From Blastocystis sp. Blastoise (Eukaryota; Protista; Bigyra: Opalinata): a stretch of 64,000 bases of DNA. A model generated the notes under the pieces. The model saw only the letters and a list, made by a program, of their open reading frames with translations, did no database searches and was not told the DNA's origin. This document shows, piece by piece, positions 8,772 to 34,902 of this stretch. The first letter of the stretch is position 1. Every line of letters begins with the position of its first letter. The DNA lies in assembly GCA_039096225.1 (NCBI GenBank), contig JBBPEB010000015.1, forward strand, positions 434,001-498,000. The letters are read 5' to 3'. The position numbers and the translations under genes were made by a program.

Positions 8772-9666
8772 TATATATATATTGTAATAATATCAATTTA
8801 GAAATATATTTAAATAAATACTTATATATATCTATTATATATGAATCATAACTATATTTCTACATTCTATAATTATTTATATAAATATTACTATTGAATT
8901 CTAAATCTTGTATCATGTCTATTTATTATATATATTATTCTTATTACTTTTTTTCTTGTTATATACTTTTATTGTTGTCGTGAATGTAATTATTTAATAT
9001 ATAATTTTTACGTACACACATTTTCATTATAAATAAAAATATGTTTTCGTTGTCATTCTTGTTTGCTCCTTTTTTTCTTTTTTATACCTATATCAATAAG
9101 TAAATATCTTCTTTGGTTCATCAGTATATAATCACCTTCTTTTTGTTATACTCAATTTTTTGTTATATCTTTTTTTTTATTGTTTTTTTACAAATAATTA
9201 AAAAAAAATGAACTTTAATGACTTCAAGACTTTCTTTTAAACAATGTTCTCATTAACATTCTATATTTAACTACGTTTTTATCTCACTTTCAATTGTTCA
9301 CATTCTTGATCGATCGTTTCTTCCAACAAGAAATGGTTCTCAATGCTGCTACAACTTTTATATGTATAAAAGAACATATAGTCATGTCTTATATGTGAAA
9401 TATATAATACTCACATTACCATTTCTAGTTTTTATGACACATTTCTAATATTTATATAAAGACAATTAACTGTCGAATCATTCTTAATACTTGATTATCA
9501 GCTGCTTTTAATATATATATAGTAAATTCAAAAAGGTTATTTACTAGATTTTCAAAAAACTGATATATATACCTAGTTTTATTCTATGAGAGAGTCAGTT
9601 TTTTTGGATAATAGAAAATTTATGTATGTAAAATCTTATAAATCTTTTACATAAGTAAAATATAAT

Positions 9667-11825
9667 ATGGAGGCTTCTTATATAAGAAATTGCTACTTAA
9701 GTTCTATTCATAATAGAAATGATAAAGCTCTGTTTTTTAAGAGTTTTTTATCATGTAATGATGAAACCTGCAAGAACTTGCTGAAATCATTATCAAATCA
9801 GTTTGCTGCGATGAATAATTTTGTTGCTGATTGTTCTCAGGAGGAGATTGATTATTTTAACCAACATTTAACGCCGTCTTTACAGTCAATTACAAGAAAA
9901 TATGCTTCTGAAATTCAAACAAGTACTACTCTTCTCTCCCCAGATGACTATCAAAATTTGGAGTACATTGACTCTGTATTAGATGGGTCTCCTTTAGTTT
10001 TACCTTGTGTGCGATTATTAATGTTTATGGAAACACTTCCATCATCTATGCCTCTAACTCAGTCAGCATATCTAAATCGAATTAATCGAAATAATCTTTA
10101 TTATTTCATTGATTTATTAAAACAACGAAATGATGTTGTTTTAGCAGAATCAAAAGAAGTAGAAAACATTCTAGCAACAATTGAAAATCAATATCTATAT
10201 GATTTAGTTAGCTCACTTCTATTTATTGGATTAAAATTCTTGCCTCTTCCTATTCTTATTTATTTCATCTTTATGTCTGGAATGAATAGTAATACTCATA
10301 TTATTTCGTTTATATTAACATTTTTTAAATATGAAAGTAAATCAATTCTTAGCAAGGAATATTATAAACATATTATCCAGCATTTCTACACCGCTTTAGC
10401 TGATAAAAGGAATCAAATTGATATTATGTCTATCTATTACTCTATTACACAAAATTATACATCTAAATATTCTGTAAATATATATTTAATTATAAGATAA
10501 TTTATGTTATTATGTTTATTATCATTATGTTTATTATTATTATTTTATATGTTTTATAGGGTATTAATTATAAGACTTGTTGTGATCAAGATATTAATAA
10601 TTTATGTATATTTGATATTCTTAAAATTCCTACTCAATTCTTTTTACAAAATGGAAATATGTAGTATGTAAACAATTAAAACAAAATAATAGTTATACAT
10701 ATATTTTTTAGTTTAGTCCTTTTTTTTTATATATTAATTGATTATGTATATATTATTTCTATATTATATATAGTAAATTAACACCTGGCGATAAAGAGTA
10801 TTATTTTTACTCTAGTCAAGTTCGTCAATATATTGACAACACATTTTCTTCTATTCCATTTTGTTCAGAACGATTCGATATCTCAAAGAATGAATGTTTA
10901 TCTTTATTAACTACTATTGATACTAGTTTATCTGCTGTATTTAACTCGTATTATCATGAACTTGCAGTCAATAACAAGGACTATTTAGTTCCTTTTAAAT
11001 GTACTGAGAAAACTGAAGAATCTATATTATTTAGAATCGCCTATCAAGTCCATAATCTAACTGAAGTATGAAATATTATTATTAATTATTATTATATATT
11101 ATTATTATATATTATTATTATATATTATTATTATATATTATTATTATATATTATTATTATATATTATTATTATATATTATTATTATATATTATTATTATA
11201 TATTATTATTATTATTATTATATATTATATAATATATATTATATAATATAGACATTAAAGGCAACCGATCTATTCTTGACTTGTGAGAAAATGTGGAATA
11301 CTCTGTATATGAGACTCTTTCAATCTGATCAATCTCTTATTCGAAACATATTTCCATTTAGAATATTCACGGTTTTACTTCCTTATTTCAAGGAAAATAT
11401 TGCTTTAAGAACATGTTTTCGTCATTTAGATCCTAATAATTTTAATAGTATGAAACAACTATTTATGAATCCAGAATTTGAATATGTTTTAGTTAGAGCT
11501 TACATTATGCTTTATACACTTGTATATATATATAGTATTTATTCTAAATATATTTTTATCGTATAATTTTATTATCTAATTATATTGACCAATTCTGTTG
11601 TTACATTTTATATATATATATATAAAGTAATATTCATTTAATATCTATAAATTAATATATATATAGGATTATGAATGTAGTCAATTTCGAGTTTCTGAAT
11701 TATTTCATTTCAGTAAAGTAAATAGAAATGATTATCAATTAACATCATATACAAACTCTTTGAAACTACTTGTTACCAGTAAATTATCAAATCCTTTTCT
11801 TATGAAAGAAATGGATGACCATTTT

Positions 11826-12560: not shown

Positions 12561-13127
12561 ATATATATACTAAATAGTATTATATATATATACATCTATT
12601 TTAAAACATTACTCACATGGATTCTTGTTATAATATTGTCTATTTTATGTTTTTTATATAACTTATTACCTATTCTTTTTTTCTAATTTTTTGTCTTATT
12701 TTTATTTATCTATTTTACTTGTATAATACATTTCATATATTTAAAAAGAAAAATATTGTTCTATTTTTGTTTCAAGTTATTATGGTTTCTTATAATCGTA
12801 TTTTCTTTTATATGTAGTTTCAATTGTTATAATTATTTGAATGATTTTATACAATTAACTTTACAAAAATTATTCTTTTTATTGTTATGACAATTATTAA
12901 TTAATCAATCAAAAATAAAATACTATTTCTTAAGAAAAATGTTCCGAAAATTTTAAAAATTCCCATGAGGTTTTCTTTTCCTAGAAAGACCAAGTTAATT
13001 TTGTTCATCCAATGAAAACACATGAATCAATTCATTCTAGGGAATTTTGTCTATTAAAGAAAACAGTGTTTGTCCCATGAAAAACAAAAAAACAAATAGA
13101 AATTTATTTCATTTGTATATCATTCAA

Positions 13128-14816
13128 ATGAATCGTTATTTCTGTTTCTTATTATTAATTGCTACTTGCAATGCATTCTATATACAATCAGTTAATGGAA
13201 GTTATGTAGATCAAGTATTCATTGTTCGTCAACGTCAACTGATTTCTTTAACTGAAATTAAAGGTACTAATTTAGATGAGGTGAAACGTGTTTCTCTTCA
13301 AAAAGAATGTTCTTACAATGTTTTCTTTGATGGTCCAAGTGAAGTTATGAATATTCATGATGTTTCTGAAGATAAAACTACTGCCTATGTTACATTTACA
13401 ATTATTACAACAGAAGAAATTGGTATTTGGAAAGTTTGTCTTTCTACTGAAGAAGATGGTCCAGATTTTCATAATGATGCACATATTGATGCTGCTGTTA
13501 TTTCAATGTTTCAACTATGTCATACCTTTGGAGCTACAGCAAAAGCTATTCGTAATTGTGTGAAATCATCTGGTGATGTAATTGATCCTAAGAAAGAAGT
13601 TGAATTAATAGCTTCTAATTTTGGGAAACCTAAATGGGCAAATCTTCATGATTATTATATATCTGATGAATATAAGAAAATGAAAGAGATTGAAACTCGT
13701 CCTTTACCTTCTTTTGCACGTAAAGAATGGGATTGGGGTATGAAAGTGATTCCAGGTGGTAAATTTATGATGGGTTCTGATTGTGAGAATGCTCGTACAG
13801 ATCCTGAAAGTGGTATGAGAAGTCCAGGTGAAGGTGAATATCCTTTACGAGAAGCTTCAATTAAATCATTTAAAATGGATCGAACAGTTGTTACTAATGG
13901 TCAATTTCGTGAATTTGTTCGTGAAACAGGATATAAAACTGATGCTGAACAATTTGGATGGTCTTTTGTATTTGAATTTACTATGGAACCGAATATTACA
14001 CGTGAAAGTTATTATACTGTACAGAACAATCCTTGGTGGCATCCTATAAAATATTCTTATTGGAGACTTCCTTATGGTCCTAAAAGTCGTGTACGATATG
14101 AATTAGACCATCCTGTTGTTCATGTATCTTATAGAGATGCTCAAGCTTTTTGTTCATGGAAACATAAACGTTTACCTACTGAAGGAGAATGGGAATGGGC
14201 TGCTAGAGGAGGATTATCTCAAAAGACATTTCCATGGGGAAATGAGTATCCTCATACAAAACCATGGTTAGGAGATCGTGATATTAAACGTACGCATCGT
14301 TGTAATCTTTTCCAAGGTCAATTCCCTTATAATAATACTGTAGAAGATGGATATTATGCTACTTCTCCTGCTCAAGCTTTCTTACCTAATAATTTTGGTT
14401 TATATGGTATGGTAGGAAATGTTTGGGAATGGGTTAATGATGAATATACTATTCATCATGATACTACTCCTTATATACCTGTAAATCCAAAATCTTCCTC
14501 TATAGAGCCATTTGATCAATTACGTCGTAATATAGATAAAAGAGTTAGTAAAGGAGGTAGTTGGATTTGTTTTTATCCTTGTGCACGTAATAGCGCTCGT
14601 CAAGGTATTGATAGTGATAGTTCTGCATCTAATTTAGGATTCCGTTGTGCTAGTGATCTTGAAGAACAAGATATTCAACCAAATTATGAAATTCATCATG
14701 GACAGTTTATAGATAAGGAATCAATTCAAGCAGGTGTACATATTGAATTTGAAGGAGAAACAGAAGGAGAAGCAGAAAAAGGACGTCCTCCTCATCCAGA
14801 TATGTATTATGCTTAA
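13128..14816 (+). CDS. SUMF1: Formylglycine-generating enzyme (FGE-sulfatase) family, signal peptide, intronless
   Basis: The likely start MNRYFCFLLLIATCNA looks like a signal peptide. Motifs: IPGGKFMMGS, AEQFGWSFVF, HPVVHVS, RLPTEGEWEWAARGG, NNFGLYGMVGNVWEW, KGGSWIC, DSSASNLGFRCA. Confidence 0.9.
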   Translation: MNRYFCFLLLIATCNAFYIQSVNGSYVDQVFIVRQRQLISLTEIKGTNLDEVKRVSLQKECSYNVFFDGPSEVMNIHDVSEDKTTAYVTFTIITTEEIGIWKVCLSTEEDGPDFHNDAHIDAAVISMFQLCHTFGATAKAIRNCVKSSGDVIDPKKEVELIASNFGKPKWANLHDYYISDEYKKMKEIETRPLPSFARKEWDWGMKVIPGGKFMMGSDCENARTDPESGMRSPGEGEYPLREASIKSFKMDRTVVTNGQFREFVRETGYKTDAEQFGWSFVFEFTMEPNITRESYYTVQNNPWWHPIKYSYWRLPYGPKSRVRYELDHPVVHVSYRDAQAFCSWKHKRLPTEGEWEWAARGGLSQKTFPWGNEYPHTKPWLGDRDIKRTHRCNLFQGQFPYNNTVEDGYYATSPAQAFLPNNFGLYGMVGNVWEWVNDEYTIHHDTTPYIPVNPKSSSIEPFDQLRRNIDKRVSKGGSWICFYPCARNSARQGIDSDSSASNLGFRCASDLEEQDIQPNYEIHHGQFIDKESIQAGVHIEFEGETEGEAEKGRPPHPDMYYA

Positions 14817-18431: not shown

Positions 18432-18857
18432 ATTTTCTTTTTTCTTATTTGATTAGAATTATTATTTTCCAAGTCAATTTTATATAACGTCTTTATAACT
18501 AAATTTATTTTTCTACTCTTTATATAATATATATATATAATTAAACACTTATTTTATATGTTTTGATAATCATCAATGAATATTTATTATTATTTTATAT
18601 CTCAATTCATTTTATCTATTCTTATGTTCGATTTTCTCGTGATATCATAGAGATCTATGAAAAACTCCTTCATTATCCATGTTTTGCTGTTCATTTTAAG
18701 AATTATTATTTATGTCATTTGTTTAACGTTTTTTTTTTTAATTTATAACTATTAGCAACTACATATAATAATGCATATTTTTAAACACCATCTTATTCCA
18801 ACTAAATAGAAAATAGCACAGTATTTAAAGATTATCACTAGTAGGCACGTTTTTCGC

Positions 18858-18946
18858 GTTAGATATATTTTTGGGTCACGTTAGATAACGAAAACGCACC
18901 AAAGCGTTCTCGCCTTTTTTTTAGACATACTTTTAAAATTTAGACA
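18858..18946 (+). repeat. Left subterminal repeats of the CACTA element
   Basis: TTAGATA/TTAGACA at 18859, 18881, 18921 and 18940. Confidence 0.75.
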
Positions 18947-19688
18947 GACTTCTGGTTTTTTAAGAAAGGATAAAATTTGAAAAATTAGAAATGAATTATG
19001 AATTCATATATATATATTTTTAAATTTGTTGTTTATATGAACAAATTAGAACTGATTACAGTTATTATAGATGTTTCTAAGCAGTGTTCATAATGTGTTA
19101 GTATTTATTTATAAAATTTATCATAGTGTTTTACATCATTCTTATAGGTTTTCGATTCTGGATATCCTCTTCCTTTCAGACATTCTCCTTGACTAGTTTT
19201 AGAAAGGTCCATAACAGAGACTTGTGGGTTTATTTATTATAAGGTATTTTATTACATTTCTTTTTTTATTCTCTTAGATTTCTTGGTTATTCTCGTCAGT
19301 ACTTCTTCTAAACAACAAGTCAAGACAATATAGAGCGTATATAAATATATCTATTTATTTTTTTATTGCATTGGCAATATTTTCTCTTTTTTCTCTTTTC
19401 CTATCAAAATTATTCATTTGATTTTTATTTACCCTATTCATATTTTATATATATTTTCAATTTATATATTATATAGAAAAGTTATTTCTTACTCCATTCT
19501 TGAATCTTGTGGTTTCTCTGATATTTTCAAATACCAAATACGATATCAGTTGTAAAATAGTTTGTATATATATATATGTTTATTTATTTGTATTTAATTA
19601 TTTATTTTTATCTATTTAATTATATTATTAATATAAGAATTTATTTATTTGTTTAAGTATATATAACATTTATATATTATATATATAG

Positions 19689-19921
19689 ATGAGAAATGAG
19701 TTGGTATTCGTGATTATAATATTCATTATACAGATAATTTTATTACAAAACAACCTTCAAATTATCAAAAGTATATATATGTTTATTATTATTATATTTT
19801 TTTATATAGATATATATATTCAAATTTATTCAAAAGTAGATAGAGTAGAAACAGTATGTGATAAAGTGAATGATTATGCTGATAATAATATTCGAATTTT
19901 TGTTGCTACTTCTCGTATATT

Positions 19922-19952
<31 letters not shown>

Positions 19953-20378
19953 TTATATCTTCTAGTCCTACTTATTTTCCTTTAACAGATGTAAAAGGAG
20001 GATATGCATTAAGTCCAATAGAAGAATATATTGGTAAGAAATGTTGGTTTACTATGAAAACAAATCTATTCTTCTTGTATATTATTATTTTATATTTATA
20101 TAATATTATTATTATATATATAGATATGAGAATAGAACAGATCAATTTATAGATTTTGAAACGAATAATGGATTATGGGTTTTTATTAATAAACATTTAT
20201 TCTTAGATTATGGAGGGTATTTATATTATATATATTATTATTATTATTTATATAGTTATAATTCTCCAGTTGGTTCTCATATTAATATAACGAATTATGC
20301 AGATAAATTAGGTCTTATTCCTGGAATCACCTATTCTATATCTATATTCTTTGCTTCTAGAACATGTAGATCAATCAA
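19689..20378 (+). pseudogene. PA14/fibro-slime domain fragment inside the CACTA element
   Basis: Spliced reading VGIRDY...WFTMKTNLFFLYE...DFETNNGLWVFINKHLFLDYGGYNSP...LGLIPGITYSISIFFASR matches the fibro-slime pattern IRDF...F.GDDDVWVFIN.KL.VDLGG.H...LGL..G.TY.F.FFY.ER. There is an in-frame TGA at 19697. Confidence 0.75.
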
Positions 20379-20541
20379 GTATATATATGTTTATATATTA
20401 TTATATATTATAATCTTTATTATTATACGTTTAATTATAATTATATTTTAGTTTATTAGTATATATACAAAAACTATAAGAGTATTAGTTTCTATATCTA
20501 TATCTATTCATTGATATATATATATATATATATATGTTTAG

Positions 20542-21568
20542 AATATGAGATACAACTTGTTTTATGATTAGAATTATATGTAAGAATAGCTATTGAACTT
20601 ATTTCAATTGATATAAATATGTGAAGATTTATAGATAATAGAATATTCAAGTAAATATATATATTATTATTATAATTATCTTTTAGTTTATTATTATATT
20701 AATTATCAATCTATAGATTGAAGCTATTTTGTTACCTGATGTATCATTTCTTTTCGTCATTTATTCGTACAATATACATTCGAAATAACAACTTACTTAT
20801 TACTATAAGAATAAAAAGTATATTATTTATATTATATATATATATATGGTATTTATATGATAACATATTTTTTAATCCTTTGTTTCTAATTAATATTATG
20901 CACTTATATATAATAATGATAATAGGTTTTATATAAATACTTATTTATAGTTTCGATGTACATCCAGATATATAGAAGATTCTAGATATTTCATCATGTG
21001 ATCATCTCGTGACTCCCTCAATCTCCACTTTAACGGACACTATTCTCTGTATGTACCTCAAGTTATATGTTGAGGTATATAGAGATAAACTACATTATTA
21101 TTAATATTATTACTCTTTATATAAATCTATAGAGGCTTCTTTATATGAATATATAACTGTATTACAATCATTATGGGCAGATGTTAACCTTGGAAAAGAT
21201 GTATATATATATATATATATATTAAATATGTTATTACTGTTATTACATATATAGTTTGAATACTTATTTTCTATGTATAAATTAAGCATATATATATATA
21301 TATATAGTTACTTCTCTTCCTTCACTTGAAACTATTTGTAATGAAAGGTGTATACATATATATATATTATGGTGTATTTATTATTATTATATATATAGTT
21401 ATTAAAATTTTTTACCAAGTGATTTTCCCCGCCAAATTGATGTTGATGAATATATTAATACACTGAAATTTGCTGAAAAACGAAAAATGTAATTATTATT
21501 AGTTTTTATTATGATTTATTTATATATATATAGTTATCAAGATCCTTATGATTATCAAAAATTATATA

Positions 21569-21607
<39 letters not shown>

Positions 21608-22160
21608 ATGAGATCAAATATTTAAAATAGAATTGATGTATATAATAATTTTATATATATATATATATATATGGAATAACTAATTTAACTACATTATTTC
21701 ATGATCTTCAAACGATAAAGAAATCTGCTATTTATAAATCACTTGTTCAATACATACGAGACAGAGATATATTAGATGTGTTATTCCAACAGTGTTTAAA
21801 TACACAAACGTTACGATTGTCTCTCTTTCTTCTTCAACATATATGTACTGTTATCCTTGTATTTACTTATTATTATTATATTCTTTATTATTATTATATA
21901 TATACATATTCTTATTCTTATATATATAGTTAACAAATAAGGATATTGATATATTTTATGAGGCTGTTCATAATAACCGTATATATGAATCCATTCAAGC
22001 AACTACCATTATATGTCAACTACTCCCTCTCTTCCCTAATCAACGTATATATATATAGAATTATACTTATTATTATATATAGAACGTGAATATTTACAAA
22101 GTTTATTATTGAATACATGTGATAATATATGTACAGTACAAGTATATATATATATATACT

Positions 22161-22193
<33 letters not shown>

Positions 22194-23339
22194 ATACTTA
22201 TACATATATATAAATACTTATATTCATATTATATATAGAGTATTAAGGTATAAGTAAATTGCTAGTATTATATTTAAATGACATCCCTGAATCACAACCT
22301 ATTCCTGATTCTATTCGAAATTCTATTAAAACAGTTGGTGAGTATATTTTCCGTTAAGGATGTATTTGTACTCCCGAATCAAATGAAGAAAAGCACGTGA
22401 TATTCCATTGATTCCACTTTATAAATCAGATAGCTTTGTATATATATATATATATATATTATTATTATTATTATATATTATCATAGACTTCTTAACAACA
22501 TGGTTTAAGAATGCAATATATTTAAATGATGGTTATAAATCATTCTTCAATTTATTATATACTTTTGAACCTTCTCTGAAATCCATTTTAATTTATATAC
22601 TTTATTATCTCGTTTTTTACTATAATATTATATCATATTATTATATATAATACAAAGAAGAGAAATAATATTAGTAAGTCTATATATATATAAATATGAA
22701 TTGAATTCTATTCCTCAAGATATTATGTATACCTTATTAACAAGAATAGCAGAGATTATTCAAATAACTCATTGTCCTTCTTCTTATATACTTCCTAAAT
22801 TACATACATTAAAGAAGATAAATAGTCATTCTATTTCCTTTAATATGAGTCATAATAGTCTAGAAGAAGTGCATATAAAGATATAGAAAATGATTTAATG
22901 GATGATAATGATATGGAAGTACCTGAAGAAGAAGAAATAGGATTAATGAATACTTATGAAGAGAAAGAAAGAGGAGAAGGGGAAGAAAAACCTACTGGAG
23001 AACTGATTTATGGATTAAGTTATATACTGAATACTGTTGAAATTGAAGGTGAAGAAGAAACAGGAAAGAAGAAAGAAAAAGAAATGATAGATATATTTAC
23101 TTATATAGGAAAGCGAGAAGAAGAAAATGATCATTGTATGTTTGTTATGTTTATTATATTTATTTTATATATTATTATTATACTTCTTCTTATTATTAAT
23201 ATTCTGTATAATATATAGCTATTGATGTGCAATATGTATATTCTCTTCTTCGTAATCAACTGAAAGCCACGAATAAAGAAGATAGATATGATATGAAGAC
23301 ACTAGGTGAATTTGTATATATTATTATTATTATTATTAC

Positions 23340-23396
<57 letters not shown>

Positions 23397-23895
23397 CAAT
23401 CTATAGATATGTGAATCTTTCTTCATCTACTTATATGGTCTTCTTATAAAATATTTTATTAGATATACTTAATTATTCCCGTGGTTATATACTACTTTCC
23501 TCTTATCTTCTCCTTCATCATCCCTCCTTACAGTGGCTTGTTGTCTTTATAAATCAATAATCGCGGGAAATACTTATTCTCAAGAATATTTTAATTATGT
23601 ATATATATATTCACTTTATATAACTTTTGATGTAGCATATTATATATTATTTACTATTTTATATTTGTTATTAATTATATAATATATATATATATATATA
23701 GATAGATATTAGACATACTACAAACAAGGCTTATTATATACTTATGAACTACAGATACATCAATATATATACTGCTACATACCTCCTATAATACCAGCGT
23801 TTTATATCCCTCATTGAAAACCATAATTATCAAAACATTATTATATGTCTTACTGATAGATAATGCGCTTTGTATATTGTAGATGATGAAAAATG
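20542..23895 (+). pseudogene. Decayed multi-exon gene fragment(s) of unknown helical protein(s) inside the CACTA element
   Basis: A series of GT-AG-bounded exons has protein-like translation (e.g. FLPSDFPRQIDVDEYINTLKFAEKRK, IYKSLVQYIRDRDILDVLFQQCL). It is broken by in-frame stops at 20973, 21403, 22355, 22409 and 23470 and by frameshifts. Confidence 0.7.
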
Positions 23896-24731
23896 TCATA
23901 TATATATATATACTAAATTATAGATATTTTTATAATTAATTTATATAGGATAAAGAAAGAAGTCATATACATATATATATTTTTATTGTCTATTAACTTT
24001 TATATATGTCTTCTATTATGTTATATTTAATTATATATTATTCATTTTGTTTTGTAAATATTATAGAATGAGATTATTGTAAAGAATTCTTTTCGAATAA
24101 TAGTAAAATGGAATACGTATTAATCCTGTTTATATTTTTATTAGATTTTATTATTTTATGTTGATAACAACTTGCAAACCTTCTCAATTCATTCACTTAC
24201 TTGTAATATCAACAATCCATTAAAATAAAATATATTATAATAAAAATGTTTGTAAAATGTGAATTATGACTTTCTAAACAACTATGTCAAATATATATTT
24301 TTATTCTCTATGATATTTATATTATGAATCAAATACTATTATATATATATTGCTCACAAATATTTTAAATTGAAATTACTTTCTGTTAAAAATAACAATT
24401 TTTTGTTCTTTTAAGTCTAGAAACATGTTGTAATGAAGTAATCTAGCTTAATACGTATAAAATACATTTATAACTCAATTTAGCATTCAAATAGACGTTT
24501 TAGTAGAAAAAAGGAGAATTTTAGAGAATTGATAACCCCTGGAAATAAAGAAATTTATAGAGACTTTTATTATAGAAAAAAAAGATTTTCTGTATTTTTA
24601 GGGCCATGTATGTATTTTTAAAATAAATTCTAAAAAATTTCATATTTATTTTTATTTTTAATTGATTCGCAACTATTTTATATAGTTTTTAAAATGTATA
24701 CTATATAATTTATTTATTTTATATCATATAG

Positions 24732-25230
24732 GCTTACGGGTCCGTCGAAATAGCTTCAAATAGGTCCTGATTATTCTTCATATTTTAAAGTTAACTCATG
24801 AGTTGTGTGGTTTAGGTGATCCGAAATCCGGTGCTATAAAAGGTATATTTTTTTACATTGTTGTAGTTTTTTTATTAATATTATCTTCTATAGGTTCAGA
24901 TGTTGTAGGAGGTCTCCCTAGTCGACAACTTCATGGTTCTAAAGGTATTTAATTATATTAATATTTTTTGAAATTAACTATTTTTTATTTTTATATAGGT
25001 TCTAGGTTTTCTCAGTGGTTCCGATTGGTCAACAATTTCTTGATGGTTGAAGGTATATTATTATATTATATATATTTGTTTACATCTATTTTTATAGTTG
25101 TGGTTTTTCTTCATGGAGTCGCTTTAGAAGTTTTATTACAAGGTATATATTTATTTATTATCTATATTATTATTATTTCTATTATTTTTATATGTATAGT
25201 CATCAAAATGGTTCCCAACTTAGTTAAAAC
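24732..25230 (+). other. Cluster of short spliced exons near the right end of the element (non-coding or decayed small ORF)
   Basis: Exons of 111, 51, 54 and 45 nt each end AAG|GTAT and are preceded by ATAG. One frame is open across exons 2-5, with a TAG in exon 1. Confidence 0.55.
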
Positions 25231-25559
25231 AAACAAAATAATTATTATTTTTCTTATTTTTTTTTATTTTTCTTATTGTTTTAATTATTATATTATTATT
25301 TATTGTCTTTTGTTAATATAATTTTAATTATCATTCACACAACGATTAAATAAATAAATAAGACAGGTTTTATCCAACAAATAGCACCCAAATTCTATCT
25401 TAAAAATACATGATAATGTGTTTAAAATGTGTATTAGAGAAAAATATAGATACCTTTAGAGCAGATAAAATACAAATAGACATATATTTGCCTTGTGTTA
25501 GAAAAGAAAAACACCAAAAACTGCTCTTAAAAAAAAAGATGCCAGCTGGGTCAAACGTG

Positions 25560-25656
25560 TTAGATAACTTCCTGGCATATGGTTAGAGAAGATTTTTTGT
25601 CGTTAGATAAGAAAATAGCCCATTTTTTAGATAAGGTTTTGGTTACCCAATAGATA
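25560..25656 (+). repeat. Right subterminal repeats of the CACTA element
   Basis: TTAGATA-like motif at 25560, 25583, 25603, 25627 and 25650, spaced 20-24 bp. Confidence 0.75.
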
Positions 25657-25849
25657 GATTTTTTTACTAAAAAACAAAATGCCTACTAGTGTATTTAAAG
25701 TATCTTCACTTAATACTTAAAAAAATTTTGTACTGGATTCTTTTGGAAAATCACGGGGAACACTAAAACAAATGTAGGCAAAAACAATTTTTTTAATTGA
25801 GTCTTATTCAAAACTAGTTGCTATTGTAGTTATATAACAATTATATACA

Positions 25850-34902
<9,053 letters not shown>

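Follow-up and report, generated by a model that had tools for sequence, protein, structure and literature searches.

What is a 6,856-bp element with the ends of a DNA transposon and an interior of spliced host-gene pieces, and why do its copies differ from one another by exactly removed introns? The question is raised by a non-autonomous CACTA element at positions 18836-25691 of a 64,000-nucleotide stretch (hereafter the window) of the Blastocystis sp. 'Blastoise' genome (contig JBBPEB010000015.1, positions 434,001 to 498,000). We consider it probable that the element belongs to a recently mobile non-autonomous Pack-CACTA family whose copies are losing introns by way of reverse-transcribed spliced element RNA. 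The apparent intron losses, read from alignments of the assembled copies, go beyond the claims of a first-pass annotation of this DNA.

A CACTA family with many copies

The first-pass annotation described a perfect 12-bp terminal inverted repeat (TIR) beginning CACTA, a 3-bp target-site duplication (TSD), subterminal repeats, and an interior of intron-containing gene pieces, all on one strand and with no transposase. All of these features were borne out. The ends of the element are arranged as follows, in window positions.

18833..18835, no strand: left TSD, TAT
18836..18847, + strand: left TIR, 12 bp, CACTAGTAGGCA; the match with the left terminus of the transposase-coding element at C8:2015452 extends over 14 bp
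18848..18950, + strand: left subterminal region, with TTAGAYA four times (at 18859, 18881, 18921, and 18940); 98-100% conserved among copies
25475..25679, + strand: right subterminal region, with TTAGAYA three times; in eight copies it has a tandem duplication of about 195 bp that includes a full inner TIR
25680..25691, - strand: right TIR, 12 bp, CACTAGTAGGCA, a perfect match to the left TIR
25692..25694, no strand: right TSD, TAT

Exact matches to CACTAGTAGGCA number 47 in the 33.3-Mb assembly, compared to 4 for a reversed control. TTAGAYA occurs four times in the left 300 bp and three times in the right 300 bp, or 7 times in 600 terminal bp, compared to twice in the 6,256-bp interior, and all seven terminal motifs are on the + strand, that is, in direct orientation. 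The 8-mer GTTAGATA is not enriched in the whole window (4 seen, 6.6 expected), and all four occurrences are in the two ends. The interior contains about 30 GT-AG introns, all on the + strand, and no similarity to a transposase was found in it. The CACTA TIR, 3-bp TSD, subterminal repeats, and Transposase_21 relatives with the same TIR place the element in the CACTA/EnSpm superfamily.

The same interior is present at approximately 16 loci with a mean divergence of 3.0%. The captured interior proposed in the first-pass annotation does include host-gene pieces, but it is not a one-off cargo. A check for further copies yielded 12 complete ones, each flanked by its own 3-bp TSD. The proposed check for an empty site succeeded for a sister copy only: the insertion site of L006 is another CACTA element's left end, which the joined flanks of L006 reproduce with 2 mismatches in 349 bp (99% identical) and a single copy of the TSD. 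No empty site for the 18836-25691 copy was found in this assembly. A candidate at C4:1171018 shares one exact 19-mer, but neither flank extends and we attribute the match to chance; nesting of the element in a retroelement was also rejected, as there are near matches beside reverse transcriptase (RT) loci but the flanks do not extend there. The twin copies L005 and L008 are on different contigs, have different TSDs, and show 6 aligned mismatches in 6,879 bp (0.09%), three of which are an alignment slip in a T run, leaving 3 clean substitutions; twins so similar at separate loci are an indirect hint of mobilization in trans. Identity to an older subfamily, which at least in part has CACTG ends, is 74-78%; this subfamily, the parental gene at C14 described below, and the ends of L001-L004 were assessed by coordinates and identities.

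In L007, a transposase of the DDE_3 (Tc1/mariner) type lies at 9657-9998, either in place of the left end or interrupting it. Near contig ends, two truncated copies have the same open reading frame (ORF) downstream of them (L023:8955-9287 and L024:8726-9226), which had no match in Pfam and is putatively tyrosine recombinase-like. A lost-intron junction of L012 (window 23460) is the exact site of a 151-bp insertion that resembles a miniature inverted-repeat transposable element and is accompanied by a 9-bp duplication.

Pieces of two host genes in the interior

The interior is made up of two spliced modules that flank pieces of two host genes.

18990..19616, + strand: 5' spliced module, matching at least 24 loci of other CACTA families at 70-77%
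19616..20620 (right boundary approximate), + strand: captured fibro-slime (PA14-like) gene piece with several exons and introns; TIGR02148, E 6.7e-8
20627..23610, + strand: captured piece from the N-terminal, ARM/UBL-like part of a deubiquitinase gene of the UCH family; no catalytic domain; TAA codons at 22355 and 23470; frameshifts
22438..22486, + strand: chimeric intron left by a 2.2-kb deletion between intron microsatellites; precisely removed in L012
23610..25360, + strand: 3' spliced module with mini-exons at 24732-25260; last 640 bp at 78-79% in at least 26 other loci

The check for parental genes proposed in the first-pass annotation yielded loci in the assembly for both cargo pieces. 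The piece at 20627-23610 is colinear, exon by exon and with 40-75% amino acid identity, with a gene in another Blastocystis (L025, 41% GC, short introns), indicating that it is one gene and not a mixture, and this ortholog continues into a downstream UCH domain. An Atlas feature search gave weak agreement, with ARM and UBL of the USP9X/USP24 type (score 0.88). The parent UCH gene is at C14:184120-191453, where the cargo-like part (184120-189442) precedes a 653-aa open frame that carries UCH, at 190620; it is not among the loci listed with the 5' or 3' module, these lists being lower bounds. For the fibro-slime piece, the left junction lies inside an AT-rich intron, where donor homology begins. 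About 10 donor-like loci, mostly near contig ends, match it at 93-99% over the 3' part and also at 84-89%. The older subfamily is without this piece.

The cargo has been shortened since capture. A 416-bp internal part of the fibro-slime piece is deleted at about 19927 and retained in one copy, and three copies hold 2.2 kb more of the deubiquitinase gene, deleted in the others between intron microsatellites. We rejected the interpretation of these two segments as second captures because the donors show both as parts of the same two parent genes. The TAA codons at 22355 and 23470 are common to 14 of 15 and 15 of 15 copies, respectively, making the deubiquitinase piece a pseudogene, and the cargo is predicted to encode no intact protein. 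The gene capture put forward in the first-pass annotation is upheld, with the qualification that the family carries a single, fixed, old cargo with internal deletions rather than different cargo in each copy. The description of the interior as gene pieces likewise holds for the fibro-slime and deubiquitinase segments but probably not for the two spliced modules. Common to dozens of CACTA loci, these are probably the element's own, with the 5' module probably its leader. Three of the other loci of the 3' module lie 7-20 kb downstream of Transposase_21 ORFs. Its last 640 bp recur at 78% downstream of these three ORFs, tying the ancestry of the family to that lineage. At window 24999-25052, the 3' module of L011, L012, L017, and L018 is partly in a diverged form (89% over the region), probably acquired from another subfamily.

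An alternative, given that the same interior is found in all copies and in the older subfamily, is that it is no captured host DNA but a second, TnpA-like gene belonging to the element, or else a protease gene that has been domesticated and is under selection. The ratio of nonsynonymous to synonymous polymorphism (pN/pS) among copies is 1.08 for the fibro-slime part, and the value of 0.49 for the deubiquitinase part also favors such a gene. However, the deubiquitinase part is orthologous, exon for exon, to a conserved host UCH gene and shares intron positions with it, the C14 parent has the catalytic domain, stops occur in 14-15 of 15 copies, and there is no similarity to the autonomous elements compared. 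We regard an own or domesticated gene as largely refuted and highly improbable; the low deubiquitinase pN/pS may reflect variants imported from a functional parent or from older copies.

These similarity searches covered single cargo exons, contiguous frames, and stored protein models, and Pfam gave nothing reliable on single exons. A cohesin loader (Scc2/NIPBL) was rejected as the source of the cargo, as PF12830 was found only at C18:750233 and the cargo exons do not match there. A tRNA-like cargo was rejected as well: from position 20500 onward ARAGORN detected no tRNA, and an Rfam search of 23900-25900 gave no credible match, although a non-canonical fold could escape both. A second piece of the same deubiquitinase gene, 78% identical, is present at C28:175944-178150. 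Its predicted protein (P0002) begins with a putative MuDR-type zinc-finger-like stretch, suggesting that a second transposon is fused to the deubiquitinase gene there.

Apparent precise intron losses among copies

By pairwise alignment, 15 distinct GT-AG segments are precisely removed in at least one copy, with 34 copy-by-site losses. These counts come from the pairwise alignments and the 23314 site; a k-mer deletion scan and a fuzzy junction matrix were too noisy to use, the latter with false calls in rows 19771, 24945, and 23462. The 18836-25691 copy lacks five of the segments.

21765..21766 (junction), + strand: lost intron of 40-55 nt, absent here and in L006 and present in 13 copies; same position in the ortholog
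22327..22328 (junction), + strand: lost intron of 43 nt, absent in 5 of 15 copies; no microhomology
22868..22869 (junction), + strand: lost GT-AG segment (cryptic intron) of 46-52 nt, absent in the 18836-25691 copy only; coding in the ortholog, and its removal results in a frameshift
23462..23463 (junction), + strand: lost intron of 36-46 nt, missing from 9 of 15 copies; the ortholog has an intron at this position
23851..23852 (junction), + strand: lost intron of 66-72 nt, absent in the 18836-25691 copy only; no microhomology

Introns of the ortholog match the positions after 21765, 22327, and 23462, as well as the introns at 21859, 22045, and 22438 (donor), and this sharing of the positions checked indicates losses rather than gains. 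Of 10 diverged loci examined, 3 likewise lack the intron after 21765. Adjacent introns are lost together in L008 and L007. Sites lost at least once are concentrated at 21765-23851 (10 of 12, compared to 1 of 14 upstream; Fisher p 0.0002, with the boundary set post hoc), and none of the six introns 3' of 23851 is lost. The removed segments include the chimeric intron, which occurs in short-form elements only and is not possible in host mRNA, and the cryptic intron, a stretch of conserved coding sequence in the ortholog, suggesting that RNA of the element itself was the template. RVT_1 matches above the cut-off number 20 in the genome, many in open frames of more than 2,400 aa. RT-coding ORFs of 2,400-2,800 aa were observed on C10, C13, C14, C15, and C29, several in tandem at 8.5-10-kb spacing. 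Words of the element are present in two public sequencing runs, at a fraction of 0.21 in one and 0.14 in the other, which is registered as poly(A) RNA from an animal gut; this is a hint of transcription.

The losses could be real and yet have arisen without cDNA, through break repair or slippage at the DNA level or with RNA itself templating repair. Tracts of (TA)n and (TAT)n abound in the introns, and other large deletions lie within or between such microsatellites; two sites have 2-4 nt of microhomology, the losses are patchy, and genomic deletion and break repair are given as alternative models in PMC3652778. Against this, microhomology at most removed segments is only 0-2 nt, with most at 0-1 nt, yet the segments end precisely at GT and AG, whereas the probability that one random 25-110-nt deletion matches an intron exactly is about 6e-5. 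Moreover, no near-miss intron deletions were seen among copies, and a cryptic intron within coding sequence was removed. Direct RNA-templated repair would give the same pattern as a cDNA route in these data. Taken jointly, these routes without cDNA seem to us unlikely.

The twins L005 and L008 have 3 reciprocal intron differences, compared to their 3 clean substitutions. At two of these substitutions, both some 50 bp away from one of the lost introns, the alleles are those of L016, a copy in which that intron is missing as well. This suggests that the event was a short conversion tract, which may have come at the DNA level from another copy. Given such possible DNA-level spread of losses, the minimum number of RNA-level events is 15, one per segment. 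Among copies, the four-gamete test fails for 40% of pairs of exon single-nucleotide polymorphisms (SNPs) at 20-50 bp and for 60% of those farther apart, implying frequent short-tract exchange among copies, to which polishing of the assembly may contribute.

Polishing also bears on the losses themselves, since spliced RNA reads used in it could have deleted introns from an otherwise real Pack-CACTA family. The lost introns are all approximately 100 nt or shorter and those of 125-163 nt are never lost, as such an artefact would predict, and the SNP mosaicism is in keeping with it. The genome paper (PMC12129017), on the Russian-tortoise strain Rus-B (presumed to be the same strain), calls the last polishing round only 'short-read', but its polishing list consists of nanopore DNA reads, Illumina DNA, and POLCA. 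Furthermore, many short introns beside lost ones are retained in the same copy, the twin transposase-coding elements L019 and L020 show no such gap, and around two of the lost introns no base within 1.6 kb tells L005 and L008 apart. Short reads are not assignable to one of two such twins. We consider an assembly artefact improbable as the source of the intron differences.

Transposase-coding relatives

The search for an autonomous partner proposed in the first-pass annotation was productive, in that transposase ORFs were found in elements with the same TIR. In a genome profile search, PF02992 (Transposase_21) was above the cut-off at 4 loci. Related transposase ORFs are present at L019/L020, which are twins (99.8% identical), and at L021-22, in elements that have 3-bp TSDs and the same 12-bp TIR. 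The ends of L021-22 match the family termini over 14 and 13 bases, and its 842-aa transposase ORF has three open copies at 99-100% identity, in frames of 846 aa. Five ORFs, Transposase_21 matches among them, can be aligned at the catalytic D, D, and E and at the CxxC and D-x-x-H motifs, and the L022 and L004 transposase ORFs match each other with an E value of 8e-31. An alternative genetic code was considered and rejected, as the transposase ORFs are open under the standard code.

The genome as a whole has about 50 loci with a CACTA transposase and about 100 ends that match CACTRGTAGGCA exactly; for transposable elements, the genome paper (PMC12129017) gives bulk fractions only. At C8:1848.9-1862.7 kb (L008:8500 to L009:10000), the left end of a family copy contains a nested 13.6-kb CACTA element. 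This nested element has a different TIR, CACTATCAGCGAT, an AAT duplication, and its own transposase ORF, of which there are at least 8 identical-scoring copies.

A model for the origin and decay of the family

We propose that an ancestral CACTA derivative took up intron-containing DNA of the UCH gene between its own 5' and 3' modules. The homology is observed, and the uptake may have occurred by template switching in gap repair or by fusion of neighboring ends. Comparison with the older subfamily shows that the fibro-slime piece was then gained inside an intron in the same orientation, and internal deletions between intron microsatellites shortened the cargo. A CACTA transposase acting in trans would have spread the family to approximately 16 loci, leaving the observed TSDs; its most likely source is the 842-aa type, from an element with the same 13-14 terminal bases. 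Copies would be transcribed and spliced, and the RNA reverse-transcribed, probably by the product of a long RT-coding ORF. The resulting cDNA would recombine with copies in short tracts, exactly removing single introns, and DNA-level conversion among copies would then spread some of the losses.

Several points weigh against this model. The evidence for transcription and for intron-less genomic molecules is indirect. The restriction of losses to introns of about 100 nt or less fits the known short-intron bias but also the limit of short-read alignment, and the fine SNP mosaic at 20-50 bp may be real conversion or partly polishing cross-talk. The losses are patchy and do not occur in long runs. 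Finally, no transposase-coding element with the subterminal sequence of the family was found, leaving the partner uncertain. We nonetheless favor a recently mobile Pack-CACTA family with losses through spliced, reverse-transcribed RNA. A stronger statement, which we offer only tentatively as a possibility, is that spliced RNA rewrites genomic DNA so often that transposon copies lose introns, including introns that exist only in the transposon transcript, about as often as they gain point mutations over their whole length.

Comparison with known systems

The non-autonomous structure, the interior from host genes, and the retained introns, which point to capture at the DNA level, support the identification of the element as a Pack-CACTA outside plants. 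Pack-CACTA elements have been described in Arabidopsis (Catoni et al., PMC6379663) and other plants (PMC8903248). They share with the Blastocystis family CACTA-type TIRs, a 3-bp TSD, the absence of a transposase, an interior from host chromosomes, autonomous relatives with like termini, and several copies that share an interior. The Blastocystis family differs in its stramenopile host, its 4-kb cargo with about 25 introns from two genes, and the precise intron losses among its copies. In the literature searched, the coverage of which was incomplete, we found no report of Pack-CACTA in stramenopiles or of precise intron loss among Pack copies.

The Pack-TIRs of animals, such as the multicopy Ssk-FB4, for which template switching was proposed (Tan et al., PMC8277862), are similar in that a DNA-level duplication is carried by a TIR element and amplified by further transposition. 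They belong to another superfamily, and the Blastocystis cargo is non-coding by shared stops. Intron-less captures were dropped from the animal screen as retrocopies (PMC8277862). RT-mediated intron loss through mRNA (PMC3652778) has in common with the losses described here exact removal, the shortness of the introns, and the presence of RT in the genome; the co-loss of adjacent introns in L007 and L008 may be a further likeness. It is known mostly between species and over long times; in Blastocystis, in contrast, several losses separate copies less than 0.1% apart, and the apparent template is a transposon transcript that includes chimeric and cryptic introns.

KAONASHI-type MULEs and some CACTAs carry ubiquitin-like protease domains. 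Like these, the Blastocystis element is a DNA transposon with part of a ubiquitin-system protease gene, but its piece is of the UCH family, lacks the catalytic domain, and is broken.

Insertion site and neighboring genes

The insertion site is intergenic, about 160 bp ahead of the start codon of a host gene (at about 25852), and the flanks are unique. This gene, at window 25852-34902, has short exons and a 2,402-aa low-complexity open frame; its end is putatively TLDc-like. The element may affect the promoter of the adjoining gene. An intronless 589-aa ORF with higher GC lies at window 13047-14816. It is putatively similar to a formylglycine-generating enzyme, and lateral transfer is possible.

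Implications

Gene-capturing CACTA elements were known from plants; here they are seen in a gut stramenopile, with the parental genes and same-TIR relatives in one assembly. The NCBI annotation labels several copies as chimeric host genes (WA158_007682, WA158_007145, and WA158_001779), inflating gene counts. How introns are lost has long been debated, mostly on evidence from distant species. In this family, some 15 copies of a single sequence with 30 introns offer many apparently recent, exact losses for which the ancestral state is known, and copies that differ by removed introns are a natural test of how genomes lose introns. The host, a Blastocystis from the tortoise gut, is culturable and has relatives with shrunken genomes and introns. 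If the stronger statement above holds, this eukaryote would have in the family its own reporter of conversion from RNA to DNA.

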